DNA of 64,000 nucleotides from Hyalangium minutum (lineage in GTDB: Bacteria; Myxococcota; Myxococcia; Myxococcales; Myxococcaceae), in contig NZ_JMCB01000010.1 of assembly GCF_000737315.1 (NCBI RefSeq), forward strand, positions 124,001 through 188,000, given 5' to 3'. Each line of letters opens with the position of its first letter. Positions within the stretch are counted from its first letter, which is position 1. The notes under the pieces are model-generated. The model worked only from the letters and a program-made list of their open reading frames with translations, made no database searches and was not told where the DNA came from. Position numbers and translations under genes: made by a program. Positions 38,013-59,403 of the stretch are shown here, piece after piece.

Positions 38013-39839
<1,827 letters not shown>

Positions 39840-39903
39840 GACACCGCCTGCGCTGTGGAGTGTTTCAGAGAGAAGGGGCGGCACCATATGGAGCGCGGAA
39901 ACG

Positions 39904-40980
39904 ATGCGTCAAGGAATCCGGAAGGTGGGCCGTCGGCTCCTGACCGGCAGCGTCTGTCTCCTGCTGGCGTTGGCCGCCCGGCCCGCCCAGGCGCTCACCC
40001 TCAGCACCGAACTGGGCGCCAGCAAGGACTACCGGGCGCTGACGCTGCTGGGCGACGTGGAGCTGCGCGAGAACACGACGTTTCTCACCTTCGGCTACAG
40101 CGGCGTGCGCCCCGGGCCGGACACCGCCCTCACTCACCAGCTCTCCCTCGGCTTCGACCACGCCCTCTCCGACCACTGGATGCTGTCCGGCTCCGTCGTC
40201 GCCGGGCTGCCCAAGAACACCTTCACCCCGCTGGCCCGGGAGTTTCCTCGGCTCGGGCTGCCATCGCTGGGCGCGCGGACGTCCTACAACAGCCAAGGGC
40301 TCGCCCTCTCGGTGGGTTATGACTCCGCGGGGCTCTCGGACGTGGAGTACGGGCTGGACGCGGGGCTGAACCTCACCCGCTATCCCCTGCGACGGGCGCT
40401 CATCACCAAGGAAACGGGCCAGGAGGCTCGAACCGTCTTCCACCAAGAGGAGAAGCTGGGCGTGTTCCGGCCCTCGCTGGGGGGGCGGCTGCTGCTGGGG
40501 AGCTGGGAGCTGGGCCTGCGCGGCGGCCTCTACCTTTATAGTGACGATCCCCTGAGCACCGGCCAGTTCTCCGAGGAGGAGCAGCAGGCGCTGGCCGCCC
40601 GCTATGCCCAGGTGGGCGAGGATCGCCAGCTCCAGCGCCTCTTCGCCGAGAAGCTCTACCGGGACATCGGCACGGCCGTGGCGGGCCGGCTGTCGGACGC
40701 GAACTTCTCGGCGGGCCTGCCCAGCGCCCCGGCGCGCTTCGACGTGAGGCCCTCGGTCACCTACCGCTTCAACGCCACCGTCCGGGGGCAGCTCTCCTAC
40801 GCCTTCACCCAGTACGTGCCGGGCCAGGGCATGAGCCACCTGCTGGCCACCCGGTGGACCGTCCGCCTGGGCGAGCCTGTCCGGCTGTGGGCCTCCGTCG
40901 CCCTGCAGGCAGACATGCCCGAGGAGGCAGGCACCGTCTCCACCGGGCTTGCCACTTTGGGCGCCGAGTACACCTTCTGA
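39904..40980 (+). CDS. Outer-membrane beta-barrel-like hypothetical protein
   Basis: Signal peptide, alternating amphipathic strands, C-terminal GAEYTF. Confidence 0.75.
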   Translation: MRQGIRKVGRRLLTGSVCLLLALAARPAQALTLSTELGASKDYRALTLLGDVELRENTTFLTFGYSGVRPGPDTALTHQLSLGFDHALSDHWMLSGSVVAGLPKNTFTPLAREFPRLGLPSLGARTSYNSQGLALSVGYDSAGLSDVEYGLDAGLNLTRYPLRRALITKETGQEARTVFHQEEKLGVFRPSLGGRLLLGSWELGLRGGLYLYSDDPLSTGQFSEEEQQALAARYAQVGEDRQLQRLFAEKLYRDIGTAVAGRLSDANFSAGLPSAPARFDVRPSVTYRFNATVRGQLSYAFTQYVPGQGMSHLLATRWTVRLGEPVRLWASVALQADMPEEAGTVSTGLATLGAEYTF

Positions 40981-42283: not shown

Positions 42284-43041
42284 GGACCTCTTCCTTGCAC
42301 GCACGCCTTCTGGCCCTGATCCTCGGGGCGCTCGTCTTCGCCCCACCCGCCCTCGCTCAGGACGAGGACGACGCTCCCCTGGCCTACCCGGATGATGATG
42401 AGACGGAGGACGCTCCCCGGAAGCTCCCCCGCCGCAGCAACGATCCCACCGCGGACTACGGCCGCATGGCTGACGAGCGCGAGGCGGAGGAAGACTTCGA
42501 GCGCATGGCCGGCGACGACGATCCGAACAAGGGCTTCGCCGGAGAGCTCATCCTCGGCTCGATGCTGCTGGAGAGCTCGCGCGGCCGGTTCGCGGACCCT
42601 GCGTTCGGGCTCGGCCTGCGCTTCACCTGGGAGTACGGCCGCATCCTCAACAACGAGCCGCTGCGCGACACGCTCTGGGCGGACGTGCGGTGGATGATGG
42701 CGGGCGCGAGCGACGGCACCACGCTCATCAACGGCAGCTCGCGCAACCACTACTTCTCCATCGCGCCCGCGTACGAGTTCGTCTTCGGCGCCGAGAAGTA
42801 CTACGGCGTCTTCGGGCAGGTGGGCGGCGGCTTCGCCTTCCAGACCACCTCGCTCACCATCGGCGAGGAGCAGACGGCGGTGAAGGGCATCAAGCCCCTG
42901 CTCCAGTACGGCGTGGGCTTCCGCGGCCGGCCTCGGCTCTCGGAGAAGATGGCCCTGTCCTTCCGCGTGGAGCTGATGCGCTTCCGCCGCGGTTATATGG
43001 ACGACACCTTCGTCGGCGGCAGCATCGGCACGGCCTTCTGA
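42280..43041 (+). CDS. Outer-membrane beta-barrel protein
   Basis: ATGA overlap with the upstream stop; signal peptide, acidic linker, beta strands, terminal GSIGTAF. Confidence 0.8.
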   Translation: MRTSSLHARLLALILGALVFAPPALAQDEDDAPLAYPDDDETEDAPRKLPRRSNDPTADYGRMADEREAEEDFERMAGDDDPNKGFAGELILGSMLLESSRGRFADPAFGLGLRFTWEYGRILNNEPLRDTLWADVRWMMAGASDGTTLINGSSRNHYFSIAPAYEFVFGAEKYYGVFGQVGGGFAFQTTSLTIGEEQTAVKGIKPLLQYGVGFRGRPRLSEKMALSFRVELMRFRRGYMDDTFVGGSIGTAF

Positions 43042-43164
43042 GCGGCCGCGCCCCTCTCGGAGAATGGAAGCGAGACGGAAGTTTTTTCCCTCTCGGGTCA
43101 CCGGGGCTGCTTCCCCGCCTCCTCACTCCCCTCGGGATTGCTGAACCTTGGCGTCCCCAGCCAT

Positions 43165-43180
43165 TGGCACGCGCCGTGCT
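43165..43180 (+). promoter_or_regulatory. Sigma54 (-24/-12) promoter
   Basis: TGGCACGCGCCGTGCT: GG-N10-GC with a perfect TGGCACG -24 box, 70 bp upstream of the YHS ATG. Confidence 0.6.
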
Positions 43181-43249
43181 TAAGCTTGAGCCCGGGTGAG
43201 GGCATCGCGCTTGGCAGTACGGCCGACGCCGCACGGTGGGAGGCGAGTG

Positions 43250-43483
43250 ATGAACGCTGAACAGAGTCAGAGTCATAGGCGTCACCTGGATCCAGTCTGT
43301 GGGCGGCAGCTGGAGGAGCCCGAGGGCCAGCCGTCCACGGAGTACAAGAAGCGCCGGTACTTCTTCTGTTCGGAGCGGTGCCGCAGCGCCTTCGAGAAGC
43401 AAGCCGAGCGCTTCCGGCTGAATGAGCTGGCGCGGGCCGGCGCGCTGCTGACCCCTGGCCGTGTTCGCTGGGGCATCTCCTGA
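43250..43483 (+). CDS. YHS/TRASH metal-binding domain protein
   Basis: DPVCG...YKKRRYFFCSERCRSAFEK. Confidence 0.88.
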   Translation: MNAEQSQSHRRHLDPVCGRQLEEPEGQPSTEYKKRRYFFCSERCRSAFEKQAERFRLNELARAGALLTPGRVRWGIS

Positions 43484-43624
43484 GCAGGCGGAGTGGGCCT
43501 CTCTTGGGCCCTTCCTTTCACCCGTGCCGGGGAGGAGCCAGCCCTACCACCGGGTGAATCGTCGTCGCGAGCATCTGTTATCGAGCCTGATGATGGGCGA
43601 TGCTGCCGTGGCAAGGAGCCCCTC

Positions 43625-44452
43625 ATGGCCCCCCTCGTGAAGGTGCTGTGCACGGCGTTGGTGATCTCGAGCTTCATCAAGCTCTCGGCGCTGGGCCTCG
43701 GATGGGTTGCAGCGCGCACGCGGCTGGCGGAGCGGTGGCGGGTGTACCGGCGGTCGCTGGCGCCGGGGCAGCTCCGCAGCGAGGCCAAGGCGGCGATCTC
43801 GGTGGTGCTCTGCGACGCGCTGCTGGTGGGGCTGTTCCGGTACTACGCGGGCCCGAGGATGGTGCCCTTCAGCGTGCCGGTGGCGCTGCTGTCGTACGCG
43901 TGGATCTTCGTGAGCTTCGAGGTGTGGTTCTACGTGTCGCACCGGCTGCTGCACACGAAGGCGCTGTACCGGTTCCACGCGCAGCACCACGTGGCGCAGG
44001 TGACGGAACCGCTGACGTCGCTGTCCTTCTCGCTGGTAGAGCGCCTGGTGCTGATGGGCGGTGGGATGGGGCTGGCGCTGCTGGCCATCGAGGTGATGCC
44101 CATCACGAAAGCAGGCCTCATGGCGTACATCCTCACCAACTACCTGCTGAACGTGGTGGGGCACAGCAACACAGAGTGGCTGCCCAAGCGCTTCGTGTCG
44201 TCGTGGCTGGGACGGCTAGTCTTCACGCCCACGTTCCACGCCCTGCACCATGCGCGCTACCAGGGGCACTACGGGCTCTTCACGGTGGTGCTGGACCGGT
44301 GGTTCGGCACGGCGTTCCAGGACTACCCGCAGGTGCACGCCCGAGCGCGCGAGGGCGTGGGGCTGACGCGCATCGGCGAGCGGCTCGCGGAGGCCCCAGC
44401 TCCGGAGGCCCTCGCCTCCCCGGCTCACGAGGACGTAAGCAAGGCGGCCTGA
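43625..44452 (+). CDS. Sterol desaturase / fatty acid hydroxylase family protein
   Basis: His boxes SHRLLH, FHAQHH, GHSN, FHALHH; YGLFTVVLDRWFGT. Confidence 0.93.
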   Translation: MAPLVKVLCTALVISSFIKLSALGLGWVAARTRLAERWRVYRRSLAPGQLRSEAKAAISVVLCDALLVGLFRYYAGPRMVPFSVPVALLSYAWIFVSFEVWFYVSHRLLHTKALYRFHAQHHVAQVTEPLTSLSFSLVERLVLMGGGMGLALLAIEVMPITKAGLMAYILTNYLLNVVGHSNTEWLPKRFVSSWLGRLVFTPTFHALHHARYQGHYGLFTVVLDRWFGTAFQDYPQVHARAREGVGLTRIGERLAEAPAPEALASPAHEDVSKAA

Positions 44453-44528
44453 CCCGGCGGCTGGCGCGGATGGGACTTTGCCGGTTCTGCGTCCGGGGAT
44501 AGACAGGGCGCCCTCCCTGGAGAGTCCT

Positions 44529-45479
<951 letters not shown>

Positions 45480-45515
45480 ACCGTCAGGACGCTACAGCGC
45501 GCCCCTGACAGGCTG

Positions 45516-45601
45516 AGCCCACATGGGCTTTCATGGTATTCATGATATTCATGAAAGGGATTGAAGCGGAGGCTCCCCAGGGCCCCCGCCCCACCCTGGG
45601 G
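45516..45601. promoter_or_regulatory. Cluster of palindromes and 9-bp tandem repeats upstream of the NLR-like gene
   Basis: AGCCCA-CA-TGGGCT (45516-45529); TTCATGGTA / TTCATGATA / TTCATGAAA (45530-45556); CCCCAGGG...CCCTGGGG (45575-45601). Confidence 0.5.
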
Positions 45602-45611
45602 GATGATCCGC

Positions 45612-48600
45612 ATGAGCGAGTCCCACGTGGATGTGCTGATCGTCACGGCGCTCAAGGAAGAGCTCGACGCAGTCCTGGAGCTCAGGTTCGACGGCCGGGG
45701 GCGCGACGGCTGGACGAGCGCGCGTGACCCGCATGGCTTCCCCTATTCCTGGCGCACCCTCCCCAACCAGCAGGGAGAGAACCTCCACGTGGCGGCGGCG
45801 TGGTCCGGCGACATGGGAGAGACGGCGGCGGCGGCCCGCTCCATCGCGCTCATCCAGCAGCTGAACCCCGCGTGCATCGCCATGAGCGGCATCTGCGCGG
45901 GCCGCCGCGGCAAGGTGTCCCTGGGGGACGTCATCGTGGCTGACCGGATCTTCAGCTACGACCACGGCAAGCTCGTCGCTGCGCACGAGGGCCACGGAGC
46001 GGACCTCTTCCACGACATCACCACCTACAACCTGGACCCGGCCTGGAGGATGGACGCGGCGTTCTTCGCGGAGGAGTTCACCCAGGCCCCGGGGCTCGAG
46101 AAGACGCGTCCTCTCTCCCTGGAGGCCCAACAGCGGTGGTTCCTCCGGGCGCTGGAGACCCATGAGCGCGGAGCCGCCCCCGCCCCCAACGAGCACCCCG
46201 ACTGGCGAAGCCAGTGCCCGGACCTTGCCTCCTGCATTCGCGCGCTGCGGAAGTCCGGACTCATTGATCCGACGCCCGGCAAGCTCCAGCTGACGGAGAA
46301 AGGCCGGGGGCTGGCCGCCGAGGAGCGACTGATCGATCCCGACGGAAAGAGGACCGACGGGCCCTTCCGCGTCCACGTGGCGCCCATCGCCACGGGCAAG
46401 ACCGTCCAGGAGGATCCGGAGCTGTTCGAGCGGCTGAGCCGGCACGTGCGCAAGGTGCTGGGCGCGGAGATGGAGGCCACGGCCATGGGATTCGTGGCCG
46501 AGCAGCTCGGCCGGCGCCTGCTCATCGCCAAGGCGGTCTCGGACTACGCCGACCACGACAAGGACGATGCCTTCCGCGACTTCGCCTGCCACGCGTCGGC
46601 TTCGTTCCTGCTGGCGTTCCTGCGCAAGCACCAGCGGCCGCACCCGTCCGCTTCGGCCTCGGGCTCCAGCGTCAAGGAGAGCCGTCCACCCGCGCTCCGG
46701 AGGGCCCGCGAGGACAGGCGCCAGGACGAGTTCCTGGCGCGAGTCGAGCAGGTCTGCGCCCTCCGCCATGCTCCCGGGACGCAGATCAAGCGCAAGCTCT
46801 TCGACGAGGCACCGGCTCCCTTCAACGAGCTGCTCGAAGTGACGATGTCTGAGGGAGGCGTCATCCAGAGCCTCCCCGTGGCCGCGCTCGAGCAACCCCT
46901 GACGGCCGAGCTGCTGACGGCCTTCCTGGACAGCATCCACGCCGAGTACCGGAAGCGGGAGCCCACGGTCATCTCGACGCTCGTCCACTCGGGCCCGTCA
47001 GCCCCCGAGGCGCTGTTGCGCCAGGCCCGCGCGCAGCAGGTGCGGCTGATCAGCTTCAGCGAGTACCAGGGGCTCTACGACTTCTCCAGCTACCTGCAGT
47101 GGCAGACCACCCGGCTGGAGAACGATCCCATCTATCCGCCCTCGCTCTACGTGGAGCAACAGGGCCAGGTGAGCATCGGGGGAGGAGCGCCCGAGCGCAC
47201 GCAGGACGTGCTCCAGAAGCTGCTCGAAGTCCTCAACTCGCCCCACACGCGCTTCGCGCTCATCCTGGGAGACTTCGGCGCGGGGAAGACGTTCCTGCTC
47301 CACGAGCTGGCCCGGCGGATGGCTCCCGAGAAGGCCCTGGTGCCCGTGCTCATCGAGATGCGCTCGCTCCAGAAGCACGTCTCGCTCAAGCAGCTCATCG
47401 CGCAGCACTTCGCCGCGGCGGATCTCGGGCGGCTGGAGCCCGACAAGTTCCTCTACCTGCTCCGCTCGGGGCGGATCGCGCTCCTGTTCGACGGCTTCGA
47501 CGAGCTCGCGCTCCGCGTGACGTACGACCAGGTGATGGAGCACTTCAACACCATCATCGAGGCCGTCCAGGGAGACGCCAAGGTCGTCATCACGAGCCGC
47601 ACGCAGCACTTCCTGACGGACCAGCAGGTCAAGCGCCAGTTGGGAGAGCGCGCCGCCCTGCTCCCGGGCTACCGGCTCATCGAGCTGGAGCGCTTCAGCG
47701 AGCAGCAGGTCTGGCGCTTCCTGAAGCAGAAGCTGGGGAACCCCGCCGCCGCGGACGAGCGGATGAAGCTCCTCAAGGGCATCGATGATCTCCTCAGCCT
47801 GGCGGAGAACCCCCGCATGCTGAGCTTCATCGCGGAGCTGGAGGAGAGCACGCTCCGTGAGGCCCTCGCCAAGTCGGGCAAGCTCACCAAGGCGCACATC
47901 TACAAGGTCCTCATCCAGCGGTGGATCGACGGAGAGGTCCGCCGGATCCATCCTTCGGGAGCGCTCAAGGGACTGGATCAGCGGCAGATCTTCCGGGGCG
48001 CCACCGAGCTGGCGCTGCTGCTGTGGGAGCGGACAGACCGGTTCGTGGACATGCGCGAGCTGCCGGCGGCGATCCTCGAGGCCGTCAACGCCTACGGCCA
48101 GCACAAGCTCGATCGCGAGGTCATCCGCCACCAACTGGGCTCGGGCTCGCTCATGGTGCGAGACGCGGAGGGACGCTTCTCGTTCATCCACCAGTCCATC
48201 ATGGAGTGGTTCGTCGCCGCGGAGGCCGCGCAGGAGATCCACCACAGCAAGGCCCCCACCGTCCTGGGGCGGAGGGAGATGAGCGAGCTGATGGCGGAGT
48301 TCTTCGTCACCCTCTCGCAGCCCGAGCTGGCGCGGCGCTGGGCCGAGGCCAAGGCGGCCTCCGCGGAGAGTGACATCCTCCGGGGGAACGCGCTGAAGGT
48401 GCTGCGCCAGTTCTCCAAGCTTCAGCTGGAGCCGCGCGCGAGCACCGGGGCCACGCCCTCGCGCAACCTGGAGCGCAGCGATCTGCACGGCCAGGATCTC
48501 TCCGGGGAGGATCTGCGCCGGGCCAACTTGAGCCGAGCCAACCTCTCGGGGGCCACGCTGGTGAACGCCAATCTGGTCGAGGCCCGCCTGGGCCAGGCCA

Positions 48601-50768
48601 ACCTCAAGCGGGCCAACCTGGGGCAGGCGGTCCTGCGCGGCGCGGACCTCGCGGGCGCCGATCTGACGGGGGCGCGCCTGCTCGGGGCCGATCTGCGCGG
48701 CGCCCGGCTGCAGGGGGCGAGCCTGCACGGCGCCAAGCTCGTGGGCGCCCGGCTGGACTCCCTGGAGGACCTCCGGCTGTTCGGGGCGGCGCTGCCCGTC
48801 CCCAAGAACATCACCCCGACCCTGGGGCTCGCCTCACCGCTCCGGGCCGTCGTCTTCAGCCCAGCCGGCGAGTACCTGGCGACAGCCCATGCCGACGGCA
48901 CAGTCCGCCTGTGGGATGCCGAGACGGGCCACTGCCAGCGCGTCTTCGAGGGCCACCTGGACGCCAGCTCCGGGCTCGCCTTCAGCCGGGATGGACGGCT
49001 GCTGGCCTCCGGCACCGATGCGGGGGCCGTCATCCTCTGGAGTGTGGAGCAGCTCCGTCCTCTCCACACCCTGTTGGGCCACAAGCAGGGCGTCACCGGA
49101 GTGGCCTTCAGTCCGGACAGCCTGCTGTTGGCGTCGAGCTCTCTGGACGGCACCCTCATCCTCTGGAGCGTGGAGGAGGGGCGCTCCGTGCGCCCCCTCG
49201 AGGGCCACAAGGGCGCCGTGCTGAGCGTGGCCTTCAGCCCGGACGGCAAGACGGTGGCCTCGGGCTCCGACGACCGGACCCTCACCCTCTGGCACGCGCA
49301 CCAGGGCCGGCCCCTGCACACGCTGTCCGGGCACTGGGGCTCCATCCTCTCCCTGGCCTTCAGCCCGGACGGCCGGCTGCTCGCCTCGGGCTCGGAGGAC
49401 AAGACCGTCATCCTCTGGAACGTGGAAGACGCCAAGCCGCTGCGCATGCTCGAGGGACACGCGGAGGCCATCCGGAGCGTGACCTTCAGCCCGGACGGCA
49501 GGACGCTGGCCTCGGGCTCGGAGGACAAGAGCACCATCCTCTGGAGCATCAAGCAGGCCATGGCGCTGACTTCGCTCAAGTCGCACACAGGCCCTGTCTG
49601 GAGCGTGGCCTTCAGCCCGGATGGAAAGACGCTGGCCTCGGGCTCCGACGACAAGACCGTCATCCTCTGGAGCGTGGAGCACGCCAAGCCACTGCGTGCC
49701 CTGCAGGACCATTCGAGCGCCGTACGCAGCGTGGCCTTCAGCGCGGACGGGAGGATCCACGCCCAGGGTTTCGAGGACGGCACCCTCATTCTCTGGAGCG
49801 TGCCGCAGGCGCGGCTGCTGCGCCTGCTCCAGGGCCACACCGAGTCCATCTCGAGCATCGCCATCAGCCCGGACGGCAAGACGCTGGCCTCCGCGACCCA
49901 GGGAGGACGCATCCTCTTATGGAGCGTGGAGCACGCCCGGCCCCTCAGCACGCTCCAGGGACACCGGGAGGCCGTGCTCAGCATGGCCTTCAGCCCGGAT
50001 GGCAAGACGCTGGTCTCCGGCTCCAAGGACCAGACGCTGAGCTTCTGGAACGTGAGCGTGGGCACGCAGCTTCGCAGCCGCCAGCTGCACCGCGGCAGCG
50101 TCACCACGGTGGCCTTCAGCCCGGATGGCAAGACGCTGGCCTCGGGCTCGGATGACCGGAACATCCTGCTGTGGAGCGCGGAGCAGGGCACCTACCAGCG
50201 CACCCTCCGGGGACACTCGGGCCCGGTGCGCAGCATCACGTTCAGCCCGGACGGCACCACCCTGGCCTCGGGCTCGGATGAGGAGCCCCTGCTGCTGTGG
50301 AGCACGGATCAGGGACGCATCCTCCGCACCTTCTCAGGTACCTCCGGCTTCACCCTCAGCGTGGCGTTCAGTCCGGATGGCAAGGCGCTGGCCTCGGGCT
50401 CGGACAGCGGGGCGCTGGTGCTGTGGAGCGTGGAGAAGGGCAGCCGCCTGCGCACCTTCCCGGGAAACCGCGGCAGCGTCCTCCACGTGGCGTTCGGCCC
50501 GGAGGGTGCCTGGCTGTCCTCGGCCTCCGATGACGGGACGGCGCGCTACTGGGAGAGCGCCACGGGGCGGCCACTGGCCACGTTCCTGGGGCACCTGGAT
50601 GGGTGCGTCGCGTTCCGGCCGGATGGGCACTTCAAGAGCGGAGGCGATGTCACAGGCATCTTCTGGCACGCCGTGAGCCTGTGCCGCTTCGAGCCCGGCG
50701 AGCTGGATCCCTACCTGCCGACGCCGCTGCGGCTGACGGACAAGGATCCGCTCTTCACCAAAGCCTGA
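45612..50768 (+). CDS. NLR-like protein: PNP/MTA-nucleosidase + inactive-REase-like segment + NACHT NTPase + pentapeptide repeats + WD40 repeats
   Basis: GICAG...LGDVIV, EMEATA and KAVSDYAD (PNP_UDP fold); GDFGAGKT and LLFDGFDE (Walker A/B); A(N/D)LxG pentapeptides; 14 repeats of GH...VAFSPDG..LASGS.D.T..LW. Confidence 0.93.
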   Translation: MSESHVDVLIVTALKEELDAVLELRFDGRGRDGWTSARDPHGFPYSWRTLPNQQGENLHVAAAWSGDMGETAAAARSIALIQQLNPACIAMSGICAGRRGKVSLGDVIVADRIFSYDHGKLVAAHEGHGADLFHDITTYNLDPAWRMDAAFFAEEFTQAPGLEKTRPLSLEAQQRWFLRALETHERGAAPAPNEHPDWRSQCPDLASCIRALRKSGLIDPTPGKLQLTEKGRGLAAEERLIDPDGKRTDGPFRVHVAPIATGKTVQEDPELFERLSRHVRKVLGAEMEATAMGFVAEQLGRRLLIAKAVSDYADHDKDDAFRDFACHASASFLLAFLRKHQRPHPSASASGSSVKESRPPALRRAREDRRQDEFLARVEQVCALRHAPGTQIKRKLFDEAPAPFNELLEVTMSEGGVIQSLPVAALEQPLTAELLTAFLDSIHAEYRKREPTVISTLVHSGPSAPEALLRQARAQQVRLISFSEYQGLYDFSSYLQWQTTRLENDPIYPPSLYVEQQGQVSIGGGAPERTQDVLQKLLEVLNSPHTRFALILGDFGAGKTFLLHELARRMAPEKALVPVLIEMRSLQKHVSLKQLIAQHFAAADLGRLEPDKFLYLLRSGRIALLFDGFDELALRVTYDQVMEHFNTIIEAVQGDAKVVITSRTQHFLTDQQVKRQLGERAALLPGYRLIELERFSEQQVWRFLKQKLGNPAAADERMKLLKGIDDLLSLAENPRMLSFIAELEESTLREALAKSGKLTKAHIYKVLIQRWIDGEVRRIHPSGALKGLDQRQIFRGATELALLLWERTDRFVDMRELPAAILEAVNAYGQHKLDREVIRHQLGSGSLMVRDAEGRFSFIHQSIMEWFVAAEAAQEIHHSKAPTVLGRREMSELMAEFFVTLSQPELARRWAEAKAASAESDILRGNALKVLRQFSKLQLEPRASTGATPSRNLERSDLHGQDLSGEDLRRANLSRANLSGATLVNANLVEARLGQANLKRANLGQAVLRGADLAGADLTGARLLGADLRGARLQGASLHGAKLVGARLDSLEDLRLFGAALPVPKNITPTLGLASPLRAVVFSPAGEYLATAHADGTVRLWDAETGHCQRVFEGHLDASSGLAFSRDGRLLASGTDAGAVILWSVEQLRPLHTLLGHKQGVTGVAFSPDSLLLASSSLDGTLILWSVEEGRSVRPLEGHKGAVLSVAFSPDGKTVASGSDDRTLTLWHAHQGRPLHTLSGHWGSILSLAFSPDGRLLASGSEDKTVILWNVEDAKPLRMLEGHAEAIRSVTFSPDGRTLASGSEDKSTILWSIKQAMALTSLKSHTGPVWSVAFSPDGKTLASGSDDKTVILWSVEHAKPLRALQDHSSAVRSVAFSADGRIHAQGFEDGTLILWSVPQARLLRLLQGHTESISSIAISPDGKTLASATQGGRILLWSVEHARPLSTLQGHREAVLSMAFSPDGKTLVSGSKDQTLSFWNVSVGTQLRSRQLHRGSVTTVAFSPDGKTLASGSDDRNILLWSAEQGTYQRTLRGHSGPVRSITFSPDGTTLASGSDEEPLLLWSTDQGRILRTFSGTSGFTLSVAFSPDGKALASGSDSGALVLWSVEKGSRLRTFPGNRGSVLHVAFGPEGAWLSSASDDGTARYWESATGRPLATFLGHLDGCVAFRPDGHFKSGGDVTGIFWHAVSLCRFEPGELDPYLPTPLRLTDKDPLFTKA
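48840..50560 (+). repeat. WD40 tandem repeat array, about 126-nt period, 14 units
   Basis: Recurrent nucleotide blocks such as TTCAGCCCGGA(C/T)GG and GCCTCGGGCTC at 42-codon spacing. Confidence 0.9.
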
Positions 50769-50804
50769 GCGCCCAGCAGCGCGACGGCAGGGGCCCGCGA
50801 GGGC

Positions 50805-52517
50805 TCAGGCCGCGACGCGCAGATCCTTGAGCCGCAGGGACACGCGGCGCTGGCCGCGGAAGGTGTCCACGCCCACCTGGAAGGCGAGATCCACCGGGCC
50901 CTCCACGAGCGACAGCCGGTCCGCCATGCCGAAGCCGATGGCATCCACCTCTGGGGCATCCAAGAGGGCCAGCTTGAGGTGGGCCGAGCCATAGCCCGTC
51001 TTCGGGGTGAGGACGCGAGGCCGAGCCACCTGGTGCTTCAGCACGAGCACGGGCTCGGGATTGCCCTGTCCGAAGGGCCCGAGCTTCTGCAGGGCCTCCA
51101 CGGCGCTCTCGTCCAGCTCGTTCGGAGTGACGACCGCATCCACCTTGCAGCGAGGGATGAGGTCCTCGGGTGTGAGGCGCTGCATGGCGATGCGCTCGAA
51201 GGCCTCGCGGAAGGCGGGCAGCCGGTCCGCCTCGATGGTGAGACCCGCGGCGTACTTGTGGCCGCCGAAGCGGGTGAGCATGTCCGAGCAGCCGCTGATC
51301 GCATCGTACAGGTGGAAGGCTTCGATGCTGCGAGCGGAGCCCTTCCCCACCCCGTCATTGACGCCGACCATGATGGTGGGACGGTGGAAACGCTCGACGA
51401 CGCGCGAGGCGACGATGCCGATGACACCGGGGTGCCAGCCCTCGGCGTAGAGGACGAAGCCCCGCGAGTCCTTCCGCGTCTCGGCCTGCTTCAGCGCCTC
51501 GGTGAGGATGGTGCTCTCGATGCCCTGGCGCTCGGCGTTGGCGCGATCGAGCACCTGGGCCAGGCGCCGTGCCTCTTCGAGCGATTCGGCGGTGAGCATC
51601 TGCAGGCCGAGGGACGCGTCATGCAAGCGGCCCGCGGCGTTGATGCGAGGCCCGAGGCGGAAGCCGACCTGACCCGCCGTGACAGGCGCATCGGGCTCCA
51701 TCCCCGCTGCTTCCTTGAGCGCCCGGACACCGGGGCGGCGAGCGGCGGTGAGCTCCTGGAGGCCATGGGCCACGAGGATGCGGTTGACGCCGGTGAGGGG
51801 GACCACGTCCGCGACGGTGGCCAGGGCGGCCAGGTCCATGAGGGCGCGGAGGTTGGGCTCCTTGCGGGTGGCAAAGAAGCCATCGTCCCGGAGCCGCTTG
51901 CGCAGGCCCATGCAGAGGTTGAAGGCGACGCCGGCGGCACAGAGCGTCTTCGTGGGGTACTCGCAGCCGGGCTGGTGCGGGTTGAGCACCGCGACAGCGG
52001 GGGGCAACGTGGCGGGTACCGTGTGGTGGTCCACAATCACCACATCCATGCCGAGATCCCGGGCGCGGGAGATCTCGACGTTGGCCGAGATGCCACAGTC
52101 CAGGGTGACCAGGACGCGCGTGCCCTCGGCTGCCAGCTTCTCCACCGCCTGAACGTTCAGGCCATAGCCCTCGCCCAACCGGTGAGGGATGTATGTGCCA
52201 GGCTGGGCACCCAACTCGCGAAGGAAGATGCTGAGCAGGGAGGTGGAGCAGACGCCGTCGACGTCGTAGTCGCCGTAGAGGGTGATCTTCTCGTGGGTGC
52301 GGAGGGCCCGGGTGATGCGCTCGACAGCGGCGCCCATGCCCTTCATTCGGAAGGGATCCGGCAGGTCCGCGAGTTTGTCAGAGAGGAAGGCGGAGGCAGC
52401 TTCAGGAGTGCGGAAGCCGCGGTGTGTGAGGATGCGAGCAGGCAGCGGATGCAGGCCGAGCTCACCGGCCAGCGCCTTCGCCTGCTGATCAACCGTCTCG
52501 GGTAACACCCACCGCAC
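50805..52517 (-). CDS. recJ: Single-stranded-DNA-specific exonuclease RecJ
   Basis: YGDYDVDG, YIPHR..EGYG, TLDCG, IVDHH, ATVADVVPL, GPRINAAGRL, GSARS, FGGHKYAAG, PFGQGNPEP. Confidence 0.97.
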   Translation of the reverse strand: MRWVLPETVDQQAKALAGELGLHPLPARILTHRGFRTPEAASAFLSDKLADLPDPFRMKGMGAAVERITRALRTHEKITLYGDYDVDGVCSTSLLSIFLRELGAQPGTYIPHRLGEGYGLNVQAVEKLAAEGTRVLVTLDCGISANVEISRARDLGMDVVIVDHHTVPATLPPAVAVLNPHQPGCEYPTKTLCAAGVAFNLCMGLRKRLRDDGFFATRKEPNLRALMDLAALATVADVVPLTGVNRILVAHGLQELTAARRPGVRALKEAAGMEPDAPVTAGQVGFRLGPRINAAGRLHDASLGLQMLTAESLEEARRLAQVLDRANAERQGIESTILTEALKQAETRKDSRGFVLYAEGWHPGVIGIVASRVVERFHRPTIMVGVNDGVGKGSARSIEAFHLYDAISGCSDMLTRFGGHKYAAGLTIEADRLPAFREAFERIAMQRLTPEDLIPRCKVDAVVTPNELDESAVEALQKLGPFGQGNPEPVLVLKHQVARPRVLTPKTGYGSAHLKLALLDAPEVDAIGFGMADRLSLVEGPVDLAFQVGVDTFRGQRRVSLRLKDLRVAA

Positions 52518-52742: not shown

Positions 52743-53327
52743 ATGATTCGGAGCGGACTGCGGGCGATGGCGCTGGTGGTGGGACTGGGGGTTGCGGGAA
52801 CGGCGCTGGCGCAGGACGAAGGGCCGAAGGGCAAGGTGAAGGTGTTCCTGAAGGGCGGCGTGAGCGACTACACGGGCGACGTGGGCGACGGCATCGACAC
52901 GGGCCCGGCGTGGGGTCTCACGGTGAACGTGCAGCCGCTGCGGCTGCTCGGGTTCGAGCTGGGCTACGAGGGCTCGAGGAACACCGTGTCGAACGATCTG
53001 CTGCCGGACGCGACGCTGACGCGCAACGGAGCGACGGGGCTGGTGAAGATCGCGCCGCCGTTCATCGACGTGGTGAAGCCGTTCGTGGCGGCGGGCTTGG
53101 GGGCCTCGTACATCTCGGCGAAGGGGGGGGCGGGGCTGTACGACTCGGACCTGGTGGAGGAGGTGCCGGTGGCGGCGGGCATCGAGTTCAACACGGGCAA
53201 CCTGACGACGGGCGTGCGCGCGACGTACCGGTGGCTGGTGGACGAGAGCTTCGCGGAGAACACCGAGCCGGGCAATCCGCAGGGAGGCCTCTTCGACGCC
53301 GCGCTCACGATCGGCGGCCGCTTCTAG
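52743..53327 (+). CDS. Outer-membrane beta-barrel (OmpA-like transmembrane) protein
   Basis: Signal peptide; LGFELGYEG, PFVAAGLG; terminal GGRF. Confidence 0.88.
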   Translation: MIRSGLRAMALVVGLGVAGTALAQDEGPKGKVKVFLKGGVSDYTGDVGDGIDTGPAWGLTVNVQPLRLLGFELGYEGSRNTVSNDLLPDATLTRNGATGLVKIAPPFIDVVKPFVAAGLGASYISAKGGAGLYDSDLVEEVPVAAGIEFNTGNLTTGVRATYRWLVDESFAENTEPGNPQGGLFDAALTIGGRF

Positions 53328-53370
53328 CGGCAGCGTGTGGCGGGGGGATGAGCCAGGCCCCCTGCTCCGC

Positions 53371-54363
53371 TTAGCCTCCCGTTACGTATCGTTGGCGAAG
53401 AGCTTCGGCGCGCTTCGCCAACTTGTCCCGTAAAGACTGGGGACGCAGGATCTCTGCTTCTTCACCAAAGCTCAGCACCCAAGCCTCCACCTCAGGGCAC
53501 ACGCACACGTCGAGGTGGATGTGAACCTCACCACCCAAGACCACCGCTCGCTGTGAGCGATGCCAGCGATGACTCTTCACATGCGCGGCCCAGCGCGCAT
53601 GCAGCTTCAGTTCCACATGCTCGACGGGCTGGTCTTCCATCATGAAGATGCCGAAGCTCCGAGCAAAGACCTGTTCAGGATCGTACTCCGCTTTGGTGGG
53701 GTACTTGAAGGGGCGCCCTTCTGCCTCGGCGCTGCGAATGCGCGAGAAACGGAACGAACGGAGTTCCCCGGTACGCTCACGTCCAAGCAGGTAGAGCTGG
53801 TGGTTGTAGACGGCGAGTGACAGCGGCTCCACGCGTCTTGAGCGGACCACGCTAGCGAAATCCTCGTAATCGATACGAACCGGATACTGCTCCAGAAGTG
53901 CAGCGATGAGTTCATCGAGCTGAGCGCCCTTCTCGGGCAGAGAGATCTCTCCTCCCTGAGACAGGAAAACGAACTTCCGCTCGACCTCGCTGAAATCGCC
54001 ACGCCGACGTGACTGCCGGAGGAGATGGTCGCGCGCATCACTGAAGGCTTTCTGATAGGGCGTCCCTTCGAACAAGGGCCCCAGACTCGCCCCGAAGCTC
54101 GCCCCGATGAGCACTGCGAGCGATGGCGGATCGGAGATTGCCGCAGCATCAAACCGGAAAACCCGGCGACGCCCCTCCTTCACCACCTTCACTCCTGGCA
54201 GACGTGCGATGGCCTTGAGCTGACGATCCGCCGAAACCGGTTGGATGCCGAGCGCTGCGGCAGCGCTGTTCCGATCATGGGACTTCCCGGCCATCAAGTC
54301 GGCGATGAGTTGCACCGTCCGATGGAGTTGGGTGAAGCGCCGCTTCTCCAAGTCGCTGCTCAT
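53371..54363 (-). CDS. WYL domain transcriptional regulator (HTH-WYL-WCX)
   Basis: N-terminal HTH; VRIDY...RRVEPLSL...LYLLG...RSFRFSRI; AWVLSFGEEAEILRPQSLR. GAGGA ribosome-binding site before ATG 54363. Confidence 0.93.
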   Translation of the reverse strand: MSSDLEKRRFTQLHRTVQLIADLMAGKSHDRNSAAAALGIQPVSADRQLKAIARLPGVKVVKEGRRRVFRFDAAAISDPPSLAVLIGASFGASLGPLFEGTPYQKAFSDARDHLLRQSRRRGDFSEVERKFVFLSQGGEISLPEKGAQLDELIAALLEQYPVRIDYEDFASVVRSRRVEPLSLAVYNHQLYLLGRERTGELRSFRFSRIRSAEAEGRPFKYPTKAEYDPEQVFARSFGIFMMEDQPVEHVELKLHARWAAHVKSHRWHRSQRAVVLGGEVHIHLDVCVCPEVEAWVLSFGEEAEILRPQSLRDKLAKRAEALRQRYVTGG

Positions 54364-54482
54364 GATCCTCAAATCCTCTGATGATCCTTAAAGGATCGCA
54401 ATCTATCCGGTGACTTGCTTGCCCCCCAGCGCCGGTTACCTGTGAGACCACGCGTCAGCCTCTCTTTGGGCCTACGCGTCAG

Positions 54483-54896
54483 GTGCCCACGAACCTCATG
54501 GGTGGACCCTTGAGCAAACACCCCTGTGAGGACTGTGGAGAACACATGATCGACTACAATCCCGTACGCGTCCCCTGGCAGGAAGCCATGGACTCCTTGA
54601 AGCCAGCGCTTGACGGTTACCGAAGCCACTGGGACCGGGTCTACATCGGCGTGACGACCAGTCCCGAGGCTCGGTGGGCGCAGCACGCGGGCAACGGTTG
54701 GAACAAGATGCGGGTGCTCTACGAGGCGTTCAATCCATCCATCGCCAAGGAGCTCGAGCAGGATCTGATCGACTACGCCCGGCGGTGCAACTTCCGCGTG
54801 GCCATCGAGAACATCAACCCGGGCGGGGAAGGCATCCAGAGCCACTCACGGACTCACTGCCTCTACGTGCTGGTAGGCAACAAGCAGCAGGCCTGA
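54483..54896 (+). CDS. Small GIY-YIG nuclease-like protein with N-terminal CxxC
   Basis: RVYIGVT...ARWAQH, AKELEQDLI, NINPGG match GIY-YIG Y/R/E/N positions; HPCEDCGEH. Start is GTG 54483 or ATG 54498. Confidence 0.72.
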   Translation: MPTNLMGGPLSKHPCEDCGEHMIDYNPVRVPWQEAMDSLKPALDGYRSHWDRVYIGVTTSPEARWAQHAGNGWNKMRVLYEAFNPSIAKELEQDLIDYARRCNFRVAIENINPGGEGIQSHSRTHCLYVLVGNKQQA

Positions 54897-54905
54897 GGTG
54901 AAGCG

Positions 54906-55418
54906 ATGCGTTACCACTCTTCAGGTCCTGACTTTCTGATTGTCCCCTTTGATTACGTGTCGCACTACAACGCCGTCCAGCGCTTGGTCCGCCCTTGGGA
55001 GGTGGAACACCTCATCCAGCGGAATGCACCTCCCTCGCTGGCTCGGTACAGCCTCCCCGTCGCTGATCAGGTGGCCCAGTGGCTCCGTACCAAGTTCGCC
55101 AACCGCCAACTCTCGTATGCCTCGGACCCGAGCGGCCTGGACTGTTGGTATGCGCCCGCCACGACGCTCCGGCGGCGCGCGGGGGACTGCGAGGACCTCA
55201 CGCTGCTCACAGTCTCGATTCTCCTGGCGGCAGGCGTCTCCGCTCGGGTGGCCATTGGAACACTCCCGGGTGGTGGGCACGCGTGGGTCGAGGGGGCGGA
55301 TGAGCAGAGCGGCTTCCTCATCGAGGCCACCTCGGGCGAAATCCATCGGTACCGCCCCTCCGATTACAACTTGAGCTGGCACATCGATCCCCATCCAGCC
55401 CTGTTGCGTGTTGCATGA
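54906..55418 (+). CDS. Transglutaminase-like (BTLCP/C93-type) cysteine hydrolase, no signal peptide
   Basis: SYASD...WYAPATTL...GDCEDL, GHAWVE, LIEAT; GAGG ribosome-binding site; 9 bp after the GIY-YIG stop. Confidence 0.85.
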   Translation: MRYHSSGPDFLIVPFDYVSHYNAVQRLVRPWEVEHLIQRNAPPSLARYSLPVADQVAQWLRTKFANRQLSYASDPSGLDCWYAPATTLRRRAGDCEDLTLLTVSILLAAGVSARVAIGTLPGGGHAWVEGADEQSGFLIEATSGEIHRYRPSDYNLSWHIDPHPALLRVA

Positions 55419-55431
55419 GAGGGCCCCACCT

Positions 55432-56445
55432 CTATTCACGAGGTGGGGCTCGGACCCCGGCGTCGCGGGGACCTCGGGCCTCTGCACCACTCGTGCACAC
55501 GTCCGGTGGATAGCCCTCGACCCGGCAATACTCGTCCCGGAAGCCGCAGTACTTCTCCATGCCCTGGGCGCAGACCTCGCCCCAGCGCTTGGCCATCAGC
55601 TTCATGTCCTGGTTCATCTCCGCCTTCTCGCGCTGCTGCGGTGTCAGCCCCTGCCATTGCACCTCGCTGAGCGCCTCGAGTGACCGGGCTCGCTCCCGTA
55701 GCCGCACCGCCGCCTGCTCCTCTCCAAAGCCCTCGGCGATGTCCGCAGCGAGCACGCAGTACCGCGAGGGGATCCCCTCGCCCATCACGAGCCTCTCGCA
55801 AATGCGCTCCAAGCACGGCCGGAGCGCCGCGTAGAACCCCAGCTCGGAGCTCGGACTCCAGGGCCGTTCGGCCCAGGGGACTGCGATCTCGGGACACACG
55901 AGGCGGTAGTTGTTGGTCACCGCCATCATCTGATCCTTCATCCCCGCGAACGCGCTCTCGCACAGCGGATGGGGTTGGCTCCTCGGGGAAGTTCCCCCGT
56001 CGGGCCCACCGAGCTGCTCGCACATCCGGCTCATGCACTCCACGCTCGCCAGCGACAGCACGATCTGCCGGGGCTGGCCTCCGTCACCCCAGGTGAGCGC
56101 GGCAAGCTTGGGACAGTTGCGCGAGATCTCGGTCCGCATCTGCTCTCGGAGCGTGTCTTCGAGCATCGACGGCAAGGGGCTCTGTCCTGCCGCGGCACCT
56201 GGGGCTGGCCTGTTCGTGTAGTACACCACCAGGCGGATGCCCAACGTGACCACGATGGCTCCCAAGGACAGGATCACCACCAGCCACGCGAACCACGGGA
56301 AGCGCTCCTTCCGAGGGGCCCGTGGAGGCTTCTTCCCTCCAGACCGCGGCTTTTTCCGGGCGGCGAGCACCACGGGCACCACCACCCCGAGGGTCCACAG
56401 CCACGAGGAGTCATCCGTCGAGAACATCCTGAAACTGTACGTCAT
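55432..56445 (-). CDS. Hypothetical membrane-anchored Cys-rich protein
   Basis: Start at ATG 56445 or 56427; TM helix FAWLVVILSLGAIVVTLGI; duplicated CPKLAAL / CPEIAVP ... C.R.CE.L modules. Confidence 0.65.
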   Translation of the reverse strand: MTYSFRMFSTDDSSWLWTLGVVVPVVLAARKKPRSGGKKPPRAPRKERFPWFAWLVVILSLGAIVVTLGIRLVVYYTNRPAPGAAAGQSPLPSMLEDTLREQMRTEISRNCPKLAALTWGDGGQPRQIVLSLASVECMSRMCEQLGGPDGGTSPRSQPHPLCESAFAGMKDQMMAVTNNYRLVCPEIAVPWAERPWSPSSELGFYAALRPCLERICERLVMGEGIPSRYCVLAADIAEGFGEEQAAVRLRERARSLEALSEVQWQGLTPQQREKAEMNQDMKLMAKRWGEVCAQGMEKYCGFRDEYCRVEGYPPDVCTSGAEARGPRDAGVRAPPRE

Positions 56446-56475
56446 CCGAAGTGGGCTCGGAGTTCTCTCGAAGCC

Positions 56476-56742
56476 ACCTGACAGAGCGGCATGACGCCAG
56501 CCTACTCGTTGGGTAGGCTGCGCACGGGCGGATCTGGCCGCCCCATCACGCCGAGTTACGCGATGACGGACACCCCCTCCCCCGCCTCTCTCATGCCTGG
56601 GGCTCTCGTCGGCCCCTGGCGAATCAAGGGCTATGCCGGCCGTGGCTCCTATGGCCTGGTCTTCCGGGCCCGGCTCGCCGCACAGCCCGACTCGCCTCCA
56701 GCGGCGTTGAAGATGGCCGTCTTCCCGGAGACCCGCGCTTCC
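56476..56742 (+). repeat. Direct repeat copy 1 (copy 2 at 57750-58017)
   Basis: About 267 bp; by eye 7 substitutions and a 1-nt deletion relative to copy 2. Confidence 0.95.
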
Positions 56743-56780
56743 ATCAAGAGGCCACCTTCCTTCAGGATCTTGAAGTGGAC
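56563..56780 (+). pseudogene. Truncated, frameshifted Ser/Thr kinase 5' fragment
   Basis: MTDTPSPASLMPGALVGPWRIKGYAGRGSYGLVFRA...ALKM, then a 1-nt deletion (CTTCCC-GGAG vs CTTCCCAGGAG). The rest of the catalytic domain is absent. Confidence 0.85.
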
Positions 56781-56900
56781 CCGGGGCGGTAGCCAATGGA
56801 GTTGCACCCAAACGCATGTCGTCAAATGGCTGGGGAGTGATGCGCTAGAGGCTCCTGCCGTCATGGAAGAAAATGCCCCTTGCCTCTCGATGGATGCACC

Positions 56901-59306: not shown

Positions 59307-59403
59307 CGCTCGATCATTGGCGCATGTGGGCCCTGGCAGGCAGTCCCTGTCCTCCCGCGGAACGAAGCGTGAGGGTAGGCGAGGCGACGTGCGCTCTGAC
59401 TGA

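Follow-up and report, generated by a model that had tools for sequence, protein, structure and literature searches.

Phage protection is provided by bacterial NACHT proteins (bNACHTs), among whose domains are PNPase, REase, pentapeptide and beta-propeller modules (Kibby et al., bioRxiv 10.1101/2022.07.19.500537), and defence-associated STAND proteins include members with WD40 sensors (PMC13581612). PNP domains of the Cap17 clade are ATP nucleosidases that are required for defence, and they form the N-terminal domains of NLR-like/Avs proteins in bacteria and of NLRs in fungi (Rousset et al., bioRxiv 10.1101/2023.01.24.525353). The same study identified the PNP domain of the fungal H. variabilis NLRN as an ATP nucleosidase that is toxic in E. 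coli. The first-pass annotation of the locus described here had treated PNP domains as established ATP-degrading immune effectors, NLR-like proteins included, and Rousset et al. agree.

We analysed a window of 64,000 nucleotides that contains one long NLR-like gene (Table 1). It shares with the bNACHTs (Kibby et al., 2023) and the PNP-armed NLR-like STANDs (Rousset et al., 2023) a common logic, in which a single gene encodes an N-terminal effector, a NACHT module and a C-terminal repeat sensor. The list of bNACHT-fused domains in Kibby et al. includes PNPase, REase-fold, pentapeptide and beta-propeller. Because PNP effectors on bacterial NLR-like proteins have been published, and their PNP clade is one of ATP nucleosidases, the gene belongs to an already described kind; its architecture and its parts are already represented in the literature and in Pfam. 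The exact five-part order is not among the members of the bNACHT/NLR-like STANDs tested in the literature, and our search returned no experimental paper on the five-part family.

Table 1. Positions of the gene, its parts and its neighbours in the window.
Feature	Position	Strand	Details
PALP enzyme gene	44478-45479		immediate neighbour of the NLR-like gene
Upstream region	45480-45611	+	132 bp; spacer between PALP and NLR-like gene
NLR-like gene	45612-50768	+	1718 codons + stop, ~5.2 kb, uninterrupted ORF
PNP/MTA-nucleosidase-fold module	45612-46631	+	aa 1-340; Pfam PNP_UDP_1 E=2.7e-16
Helical insert within PNP fold	46038-46361	+	aa ~143-250; gap relative to MTAN
NA-iREase3 domain (NACHT-associated inactive restriction-endonuclease fold)	46722-47084	+	aa 371-491; Pfam PF22739 E=2e-35
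NACHT NTPase module	47256-48416	+	Pfam NACHT core 47256-47729, then helical/winged-helix parts to aa 935
Walker A GDFGAGKT	47268-47291	+	invariant in 22 homologues
Walker B LLFDGFDE	47481-47504	+	invariant in 22 homologues
Sensor-1 ITSRT	47586-47603	+	invariant in 22 homologues
Pentapeptide-repeat beta-helix	48462-48761	+	aa 951-1050, about 20 pentapeptides; PF00805 E=2.5e-32
14 WD40 repeats	48801-50564	+	predicted sensor; Pfam WD40 E=1e-142, 14 stretches
Degenerate 15th blade and conserved C-terminal tail	50565-50765	+	tail contains ...FWHAVSLCRFEPGELDPYLPTPL...
RecJ gene	50805-52517	minus	immediate neighbour of the NLR-like gene

A five-part NLR-like protein

The open frame spans 45561-50768 (+). 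We take the ATG at 45612 as the supported start because three homologues (P0021, P0029 and P0017) match the protein residue 1 to residue 1. The five-part order proposed in the first-pass annotation (PNP, inactive REase-like segment, NACHT, pentapeptide repeats, WD40 repeats) held in full, all parts being matched in Pfam searches within a single ORF. Grouped by role, the protein displays the tripartite layout of the class, with PNP at residues 1-340, NACHT at 549-935, and pentapeptide plus 14 WD40 repeats at 951-1651. At its center, the NACHT module (Pfam NACHT E=3.9e-10, 40.3 bits vs. a cut-off of 26.7) retains the signatures of NACHT-clade STANDs, that is Walker A (with its lysine K559), Walker B and the sensor-1 arginine. 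The middle segment had been predicted as an inactive REase-like domain at about 46720-47090, which the Pfam boundaries reproduce. Its family assignment changed, from the suggested NA-iREase1 to NA-iREase3 (PF22739), which is matched over its full length (model positions 1-118 of 118) and lies N-terminal to NACHT. The D...(D/E)xK catalytic motif of REases is not conserved in this domain across 22 homologues, in which the invariant columns are hydrophobic.

The C-terminal half is repetitive. Tandem Repeats Finder (TRF) detects periods of 15, 30 and 45 nt in the pentapeptide region, and a 126-nt period in 10.7 copies in the WD40 region. Parsing of the repeats yielded 14 good WD40 repeats (residues 1064-1651; mean pairwise identity 40%) and a degenerate 15th; the count of 14, already given in the first-pass annotation, is thus the same from the Pfam stretches and from this separate parsing. 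Fourteen repeats would be enough for two seven-bladed propellers. The C-terminal tail is about 50% identical among homologues, above the propellers.

Compared with the enterobacterial bNACHTs that have been assayed, the myxobacterial five-part family is much larger (1.4-1.8 kaa), and its NACHT region differs in lacking a PADLOC defence-model match: no Avs or bNACHT model matched this region, which gave weak P-loop matches only. Membership in Avs1-5 (AVAST) was rejected, as no Avs/AVAST model appeared among the PADLOC matches at E<=0.1 and the sensor is built of WD40 rather than TPR repeats. Fungal PNP_UDP-NACHT-WD40/TPR NLRs (NWD/HNWD-type) resemble the protein in outer architecture, with PNP, NACHT and a repeat sensor. 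They differ in that NA-iREase3 and pentapeptide modules are not reported in them, and in that some of the fungal WD40 NLRs carry near-identical internal repeats, whereas the repeats here are ~40% identical.

We consider it probable, with a fair margin for error, that the gene is a one-gene system of a Hyalangium-like myxobacterium, encoding an NLR-type immune sensor (NACHT STAND NTPase) armed with a PNP effector whose predicted cleavage of ATP/dATP leads to abortive infection. We infer the binding of a trigger, oligomerisation, the substrate and the anti-phage, abortive-infection phenotype. In the proposed mechanism, the two WD40 propellers at the C-terminus, probably with help from the pentapeptide beta-helix, would keep the protein as an autoinhibited monomer. 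Binding of a ligand to the propeller, most probably a phage protein, would allow the ATP-bound NACHT module to oligomerise, which would bring the N-terminal PNP modules together via the non-catalytic NA-iREase3 adaptor. The clustered nucleosidases would then switch on and, like Cap17 and DtcC, cut ATP/dATP at the N-glycosidic bond, and the drained nucleotide pool would leave the infected cell arrested or killed. The activating step sets this scheme apart from Cap17 (CBASS) and DtcC (Detocs), in which a cyclic oligonucleotide or phosphotransfer takes the place of the proposed NACHT oligomerisation.

Locus, gain and recurrence of the gene

The first-pass annotation had described a solitary insertion between housekeeping genes. 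In line with this, the flanking PALP and RecJ genes adjoin each other, 12-55 bp apart, in four relatives (Hyalangium versicolor and three Hyalangium MAGs), and none of the 80 related RecJ loci (80/80) contains any piece of the NLR-like gene. Synteny shows the gene to be a lineage-specific gain, peculiar to the strain; absence from all 80 loci also makes its accessory status clear and excludes a universally conserved housekeeping gene. Myxococcus xanthus DK1622 has no copy at its RecJ locus. The description of the flanks needs a qualification, because PALP and a fatty-acid hydroxylase gene themselves lie inside a variable interval, and synteny is lost from 2.6 kb downstream, in a stretch with a candidate defence pair. 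The pair (PDC-M20) is found, along with a WYL regulator, 2.6-10 kb away from the gene. In relatives, the RecJ-unkB interval holds ordinary accessory genes (LysR, hydrolase, MFS transporter, kinase), and the immediate neighbourhood is no classical defence island. When we compared the two junctions, no repeat of >=9 nt, direct or inverted, was common to both, and mobile-element signatures were absent; the whole window is free of tRNA and Rfam elements. The gene's GC (0.69-0.72) and its GC3 equal those of the genome, so that composition was uninformative about a foreign origin.

The spacer between PALP and RecJ measures only ~12 bp in H. versicolor, vs. the 132-bp upstream region found here, and this region arrived together with the gene. 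It contains three tandem TTCATGRWA units (45530-45556), within which TTCATGA-TAT-TCATGAA forms a perfect inverted repeat (45539-45555), a possible operator. The TTCATGRWA motif is absent 5' of the homologues L081-L083, and a scan 5' of the gene identified neither a sigma-70-like promoter nor an intrinsic terminator.

The five-part architecture recurs, full length and at 42-65% identity, in >20 homologues from Sorangium, Hyalangium and metagenomes. Its neighbours are unrelated every time, with four genomic contexts that have no neighbour in common, and this argues that the five-part gene works as a one-gene system. Searches for plasmid-borne full-length relatives found separate modules only. 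Between homologues, the C-terminal half of the PNP module (63-67%) and the NACHT nucleotide-binding domain (62-63%) are the most conserved parts, and WD40 is the least conserved large domain (33-40%). A variable sensor joined to conserved enzymatic cores is consistent with a diversifying receptor.

What such a receptor recognises need not be viral. Myxobacteria are multicellular and contain many STAND proteins, whose roles are possibly not antiviral. The same machine could thus answer a non-viral cue (such as kin/non-kin determinants, incoming toxins or effectors, or developmental signals) and bring about growth arrest or regulated cell death as part of myxobacterial social life, comparable to the fungal allorecognition PNP_UDP-NACHT-WD40 and HET-type NLRs. 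Several observations fit this picture: the host is a myxobacterium, as judged from a RecJ that is 92-93% identical to Hyalangium RecJ; the family is concentrated in large-genome Myxococcota, in Sorangium and Hyalangium; no recognised defence island surrounds the gene; in the literature, the corresponding fungal architecture is tied to allorecognition; and presence or absence from strain to strain also suits polymorphic recognition loci. Yet the WD40 repeats, at ~40% internal identity, lack the very high internal conservation of fungal allorecognition NLRs, no polymorphic partner locus is evident, and the bacterial NACHT and PNP systems that have been tested experimentally are all anti-phage (Rousset et al.; Kibby et al.). 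We therefore regard a social cue as unlikely, although it retains some plausibility, and favour an anti-phage sensor.

The PNP module and its insert

The anti-phage reading places the chemistry of defence in the N-terminal PNP module. Its Pfam PNP_UDP_1 match falls in two separated stretches. The predicted catalytic residues E17, E288 and D311 are invariant across 31 aligned modules and are the equivalents of E12, E174 and D197 of MTAN. D311 also corresponds to the catalytic aspartates D472 of Cap17 and D353 of DtcC, which have the same PNP_UDP_1 fold. An AF2 model of the module (pLDDT 89.9, pTM 0.88) retrieved MTAN in Foldseek (E~1e-15, TM about 0.8 on the target); E. coli MtnN and futalosine hydrolase, with which the catalytic triad is common, are the best structural match. 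Nevertheless, MtnN is only 14-17% identical to the module, and it is a housekeeping enzyme that stands alone, is about 230 residues long and has neither the insert nor fusion partners. Searching the PDB by profile for a solved immune PNP or for the insert retrieved housekeeping MTAN and DeoD enzymes only.

Profile scores, the sole basis of this comparison, place the module closer to defence-system PNPs than to housekeeping MTAN: the PADLOC profiles PDC-M60C (1.9e-39) and CBASS 'Effector PN-superfamily' (506 positions; 8.2e-26) match it, whereas the NCBIfam MTAN equivalog reaches 59 bits vs. a cut-off of 169, and futalosine hydrolase 38 bits vs. 125. Elsewhere, the ~340-residue module is fused to Ser/Thr kinases, AAA_15/21 ATPases, NB-ARC-TPR, TIR, trypsin, vWA, Roc-COR-LRR, ankyrin and EAD1, a shuffling typical of conflict-system effectors.

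The fold is interrupted, as the first-pass annotation had suggested when it placed an insertion of ~90 residues in the PNP domain: residues 120-256 align to MTAN 107-147, which adds about 95 residues net. The module is longer than the Cap17-type profile as well, by about 70 residues in profile positions, and the additional residues relative to MTAN form a helical subdomain. Modeled alone, the insert remains helical, with good confidence (AF2, pLDDT 85). A profile of the insert retrieved 589 protein clusters, in which its position within the protein is nearly always identical. Foldseek with the insert returned the N-terminal winged helices of DtxR, MarR, MntR and DnrK consistently (best E=0.06), and nothing at E<=0.001, which makes the winged-helix assignment tentative; the insert is possibly a winged helix of weak resemblance. 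The closest homologue lacks residues 175-246, the core of the insert, and keeps the remainder of the module, which suggests that the insert is accessory. Neither the insert nor the linker nor the C-terminal tail has a family in Pfam or PADLOC.

Judged by profile positions, the ~95-residue insert lies outside the Cap17-type profile, and substrate specificity may therefore differ from that of Cap17. Instead of ATP, the effector could use NAD+ or a different nucleotide, a signal of nucleoside type, or adenine in a nucleic acid, with the winged-helix-like insert binding nucleic acid or a ligand. The conserved position of the insert, its DNA-binding winged helices as best structural neighbours and an earlier computational prediction of NAD+/nucleotide-derivative chemistry for NACHT-fused PNPases (Kibby et al., discussion, bioRxiv 10.1101/2022.07.19.500537) all point in this direction. 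Against it, the MTAN-type residues for catalysis on adenine and ribose are all kept, Foldseek supports a winged helix weakly, the closest homologue dispenses with the insert core, and the immune PNPs assayed so far (bacterial, fungal and sponge) all prefer ATP (Rousset et al., bioRxiv 10.1101/2023.01.24.525353). On balance, we find a different substrate improbable. Going further, the insert might define a functionally distinct immune PNP subfamily, serving in nucleic-acid or ligand binding or as an oligomerisation switch, in which the target is not free ATP (e.g. adenine removal from nucleic acid or from a nucleotide-derived signal) and the NLR maybe answers non-viral social cues of myxobacteria; this extended proposal we consider more doubtful still.

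The idea of a decaying or non-functional gene of acquired origin, or of a housekeeping MTA/SAH nucleosidase joined to scaffold domains, is effectively refuted: housekeeping MtnN has the PNP_UDP_1 fold too, and the best solved-structure matches are MTANs, but the MTAN score falls far under its cut-off, the module is fused within a protein of 1718 residues, the ORF is unbroken over 5.2 kb with a GC3 of 0.92 (usual for real genes of the host genome), the catalytic and NTPase motifs are all invariant, the full-length architecture is kept in the homologues, and none of the close relatives has the gene.

Meaning for bacterial and fungal NLRs

Taken as a PNP-armed immune sensor, the gene alone neither overturns nor opens a major question. 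It adds a well-delimited, apparently recently gained PNP-armed bacterial NLR from a myxobacterium; mildly new are the PNP insert, conserved across its protein clusters, and the variable genomic hotspot. Because it consists of one gene with its own upstream region, and isogenic-like relatives without the gene exist, it is a clean experimental candidate. It could help to ask what the WD40-propeller sensors of prokaryotic STANDs recognise, whether NACHT oligomerisation activates an ATP nucleosidase, and which purpose the widespread helical insert serves in this PNP clade. The bacterial ancestry of fungal NLRs of the PNP_UDP-NACHT-WD40 type is a further subject to which the gene is relevant.

Domain architecture and the nucleosidase module

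The NLR gene, a bacterial NLR-like gene, occupies a single plus-strand open reading frame (45561-50768) with a GC3 of 0.92, in a window of 67.5% G+C whose real genes have GC3 above 0.8. Two ATG codons, at 45603 and 45612, both follow a G-rich stretch. In alignments with three homologous proteins (P0021, P0029 and P0017) the first residues coincide when the protein is begun at 45612, which supports the start chosen in the first-pass annotation (1718 amino acids). Pfam scans of the entire protein and of its sub-segments likewise matched the five-part domain order proposed there, with the middle segment at nearly the predicted coordinates (about 46720-47090), and the 14 predicted WD40 repeats were recovered both as Pfam stretches and, on repeat parsing, as 14 regular 42-residue units (amino acids 1064-1651) followed by a degenerate fifteenth and a 67-residue tail. 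Tandem Repeats Finder gave periods of 126 nt for the WD40 region and 15/30/45 nt for the pentapeptides. One suggestion had to be replaced: for the middle segment the matching family is NA-iREase3, not NA-iREase1. The expected inactivity of the segment was borne out, as across 22 homologues its conserved positions are mainly hydrophobic and the D...(D/E)xK signature is absent, in agreement with the description of the family as catalytically inactive. In the NACHT domain, Walker A (GDFGAGKT), Walker B (LLFDGFDE) and sensor-1 (ITSRT) are invariant in 22 homologues.

Features of the NLR gene and its surroundings (positions in the window)
Feature	Position	Strand	Match or remark
AspRS	38013-39908	minus	
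Two conserved unknown ORFs, 393 and 444 aa	39799-42283	+	no Pfam match
Fatty-acid hydroxylase	43493-44452		
PALP, PLP-dependent enzyme	44478-45479		
NLR gene	45612-50768	+	
PNP_UDP_1 (NLR protein)			two separated stretches, Pfam E=2.7e-16
NA-iREase3, PF22739 (NLR protein)	46722-47084		Pfam E=2e-35, model positions 1-118 of 118
NACHT (NLR protein)			Pfam 40.3 bits, cut-off 26.7
Pentapeptide (NLR protein)			Pfam E=2.5e-32
WD40 (NLR protein)			14 stretches, Pfam E=1e-142
RecJ	50805-52517	minus	
Outer-membrane beta-barrel protein	52743-53327		
WYL-WCX regulator	53371-54372	minus	lower-GC patch (0.60)
Ser/Thr protein kinase, 513 aa	57765-59306	+	PADLOC mad6, PD-T4-6 kinase models, down to 2.6e-42
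PDC-M20 M20B	59404-60324	minus	PADLOC 3.5e-126; Pfam TsiV 'Type VI immunity for VRR-NUC' 6e-55
PDC-M20 M20A	60321-61145	minus	PADLOC 5e-101
819-aa ORF	61324-63783	minus	weak AAA_35 match; just upstream of PDC-M20 pair

Against solved MTA/SAH nucleosidases (MTAN), the PNP module aligns in two blocks, query 68-120 with MTAN 55-107 and query 256-338 with MTAN 147-232. The three MTAN catalytic residues correspond to E17, E288 (in AEMEA) and D311 (in AVSDYAD); these are invariant in 31 aligned homologous modules, and across 88 modules each is conserved in 95% or more. D311 is equivalent to the catalytic Asp of the immune effectors Cap17 (D472, CBASS) and DtcC (D353, Detocs), where the D472A and D353A mutations abolish defence (Rousset et al., bioRxiv 10.1101/2023.01.24.525353). 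A confident AlphaFold2 model of amino acids 1-365, built on the alignment of homologous modules (pLDDT 89.9, pTM 0.88), matched MTAN and futalosine hydrolase in Foldseek (E~1e-15, target TM ~0.8). The PADLOC profiles PDC-M60C (1.9e-39) and CBASS 'Effector PN-superfamily' (506 positions; 8.2e-26) both match the module, the length and domain position of the latter fitting the 505-residue Cap17 with its PNP at residues 239-505; NCBIfam MTAN scores 59 bits, with a cut-off of 169. By these scores the module resembles defence-system profiles much better than housekeeping models, and together with the conserved residues they lead us to predict that the module is an immune-type PNP with nucleosidase activity.

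Across ten full-length homologues, conservation is 63-67% in the C-terminal half of the PNP, 62-63% in the NACHT nucleotide-binding domain, 36-40% in iREase3, about 40% in the PNP insert and 33-40% in the two WD40 propellers. This distribution would fit a diversifying receptor on a conserved engine and weapon, and is supportive only, given imperfect alignment of the repeats. The C-terminal tail past the last WD40 blade (50565-50765, ...FWHAVSLCRFEPGELDPYLPTPL...) matched no Pfam family and is about 50% conserved, against 33-40% for the propellers.

A helical insert and the spread of the module

The interruption of the PNP domain, put at about 90 residues on first reading, amounts to some 95 extra residues between the two MTAN-aligned blocks of the structure-based alignment. 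Residues ~143-250 form helices in the model of amino acids 1-365, with a short hairpin after them, and the insert modelled alone (pLDDT 85) adopts the same secondary structure. Foldseek returned no match for it at E<=0.001; the weak matches (best E=0.06, probability up to 0.97) are nearly all winged-helix domains (DtxR, IdeR, MntR, MarR-family proteins and the N-terminal domain of DnrK-type methyltransferases), and we tentatively describe the insert as winged-helix-like.

The insert is common to many PNP modules and not peculiar to the NLR gene. Each of ~95 recovered modules aligns over ~340 residues, insert included, and an insert-only profile run against 1.84 billion representatives found 589 clusters (50% identity); E<=1e-10 was reached by 424 clusters, and in nearly all cases the match lay at residues ~130-260 of the protein. 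The closest homologue, P0002 (1631 aa, 65% identity), carries a clean in-frame 72-residue deletion (amino acids 175-246, nt 46134-46349) that removes exactly the core of the insert and leaves conserved flanks, which suggests a separable accessory subdomain; P0002 would be a natural variant lacking the insert, unless the gap is an artefact in the assembly of its single 5.3-kb contig.

Several Sorangium strains encode five-part homologues (~51% identity over the N-terminal 940 residues), a partial Hyalangium protein is 61% identical, and metagenomes contain others; a further ten representatives, 1680-1823 aa long, can be aligned end to end at 42-48% identity. Elsewhere the insert-bearing module is fused to protein kinases, AAA_15/21 ATPases, NB-ARC-TPR, TIR, trypsin, vWA, Roc-COR-LRR, ankyrin repeats and the EAD1 domain, fusions that we read as classic conflict-system effector shuffling.

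Gain of the gene at a variable locus

A RecJ scan of species-representative genomes gave 80 loci, the best in Hyalangium versicolor and Hyalangium MAGs (92-93% identity), which places the window in a Hyalangium-like member of the Myxococcota. PALP and RecJ converge in H. versicolor and three of the MAGs, with a gap of only 12-55 bp, and in the window the gap is 5.3 kb (45480-50804); no piece of the NLR gene was found in the 80 loci at E<=1e-5. Because the two flanking genes abut in four relatives and the 80 loci hold no such piece, we infer a lineage-specific gain of this single gene with its own 132 bp of upstream sequence. At the insertion there is neither a target-site duplication nor a terminal inverted repeat, and neither a tRNA nor an unusual base composition was found. 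The interval from RecJ to unkB, a conserved unknown gene, spans 8.5 kb in the window (42284-50804), against 0.8-7.9 kb among 42 relatives, where about 1.2 kb is the commonest length. In relatives (loci L002-L079) it contains LysR, alpha/beta hydrolase, MFS, kinase plus DUF2381, or TPR genes; it is a variable hotspot of unrelated accessory genes. PALP is common to only four relatives and the fatty-acid hydroxylase to only one, so that the left neighbours are themselves accessory. The earlier description of a gene inserted singly between housekeeping genes thus stands as to the lone insertion between PALP and RecJ, and needs qualifying as to the nature of PALP and the hydroxylase. No neighbouring gene recurs between any two of four loci, the window and those of three homologues (one on a Sorangium chromosome, two on metagenomic contigs), which argues that the NLR protein acts without a dedicated partner, as a probable one-gene system.

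Further left, the unknown ORF pair is kept beside AspRS in Myxococcus, Corallococcus, Archangium and Hyalangium (45-78% identity). Just upstream of the NLR start, three tandem TTCATGRWA units (45530-45556) enclose a perfect inverted repeat, TTCATGA-TAT-TCATGAA (45539-45555); AT-rich in a genome of 68% GC, the site resembles an operator, and the motif is absent upstream of three homologues.

No counterpart to the last 10.7 kb of the window (53300-64000), on the far side of the outer-membrane protein gene, lies beside OMP-RecJ in any of 80 related genomes, and this stretch is for that reason a second variable region. The kinase matches there may reflect generic kinase similarity only. The M20A/M20B pair, a PADLOC candidate defence system, may be a defence module or, since M20B also matches TsiV, a toxin/immunity module. 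Near the Sorangium homologue (locus L081), 1.1 kb downstream, there is likewise a WYL-WCX regulator (13471-14433), possibly by coincidence. Because the right-hand 10.7 kb lacks a counterpart and carries the WYL-WCX regulator and PDC-M20, we regard the region as plastic rather than as a textbook defence island.

Proposed mechanism and novelty

The literature bears out two premises of the first-pass annotation, that PNP domains are established ATP-degrading immune effectors and NACHT proteins established anti-phage sensors. The PNP domains of Cap17 and DtcC convert ATP/dATP to adenine and sugar triphosphate, a cleavage necessary for their abortive-infection defence; their clade is N-terminal in bacterial NLR-like/Avs proteins and in fungal and coral NLRs, and a PNP domain taken from a fungal NLR shows this activity as well (Rousset et al., bioRxiv 10.1101/2023.01.24.525353). 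Bacterial NACHT proteins are anti-phage, with fused domains that include PNPase, REase, pentapeptide and beta-propeller (Kibby et al., bioRxiv 10.1101/2022.07.19.500537), and a 2026 survey notes that WD40 propellers serve as the sensors in STANDs associated with defence (PMC13581612). The NLR protein has its catalytic Asp in common with Cap17/DtcC and the same kinds of fused domain as the NACHT proteins.

On the basis of these findings, and by analogy at each step, the most likely mechanism is that binding of a ligand, most probably a phage protein, by the propellers would relieve autoinhibition, that the NACHT module would then oligomerise, and that PNP modules gathered via the iREase3 adaptor would deplete ATP/dATP. 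It is unlikely that the ligand is instead a non-viral trigger tied to myxobacterial social life, and somewhat less likely again that the enzyme, through its insert, acts on a substrate other than ATP/dATP. A housekeeping or decayed gene is effectively excluded.

A PNP-NACHT-WD40 protein in a myxobacterium would not surprise specialists. Modestly new are the recent gain of a single gene at a defined hotspot, for which the evidence is clean, P0002 as a putative natural insert-deletion variant, and the insert as a widespread conserved subdomain, possibly a winged helix, that appears to be absent from characterised immune PNPs.
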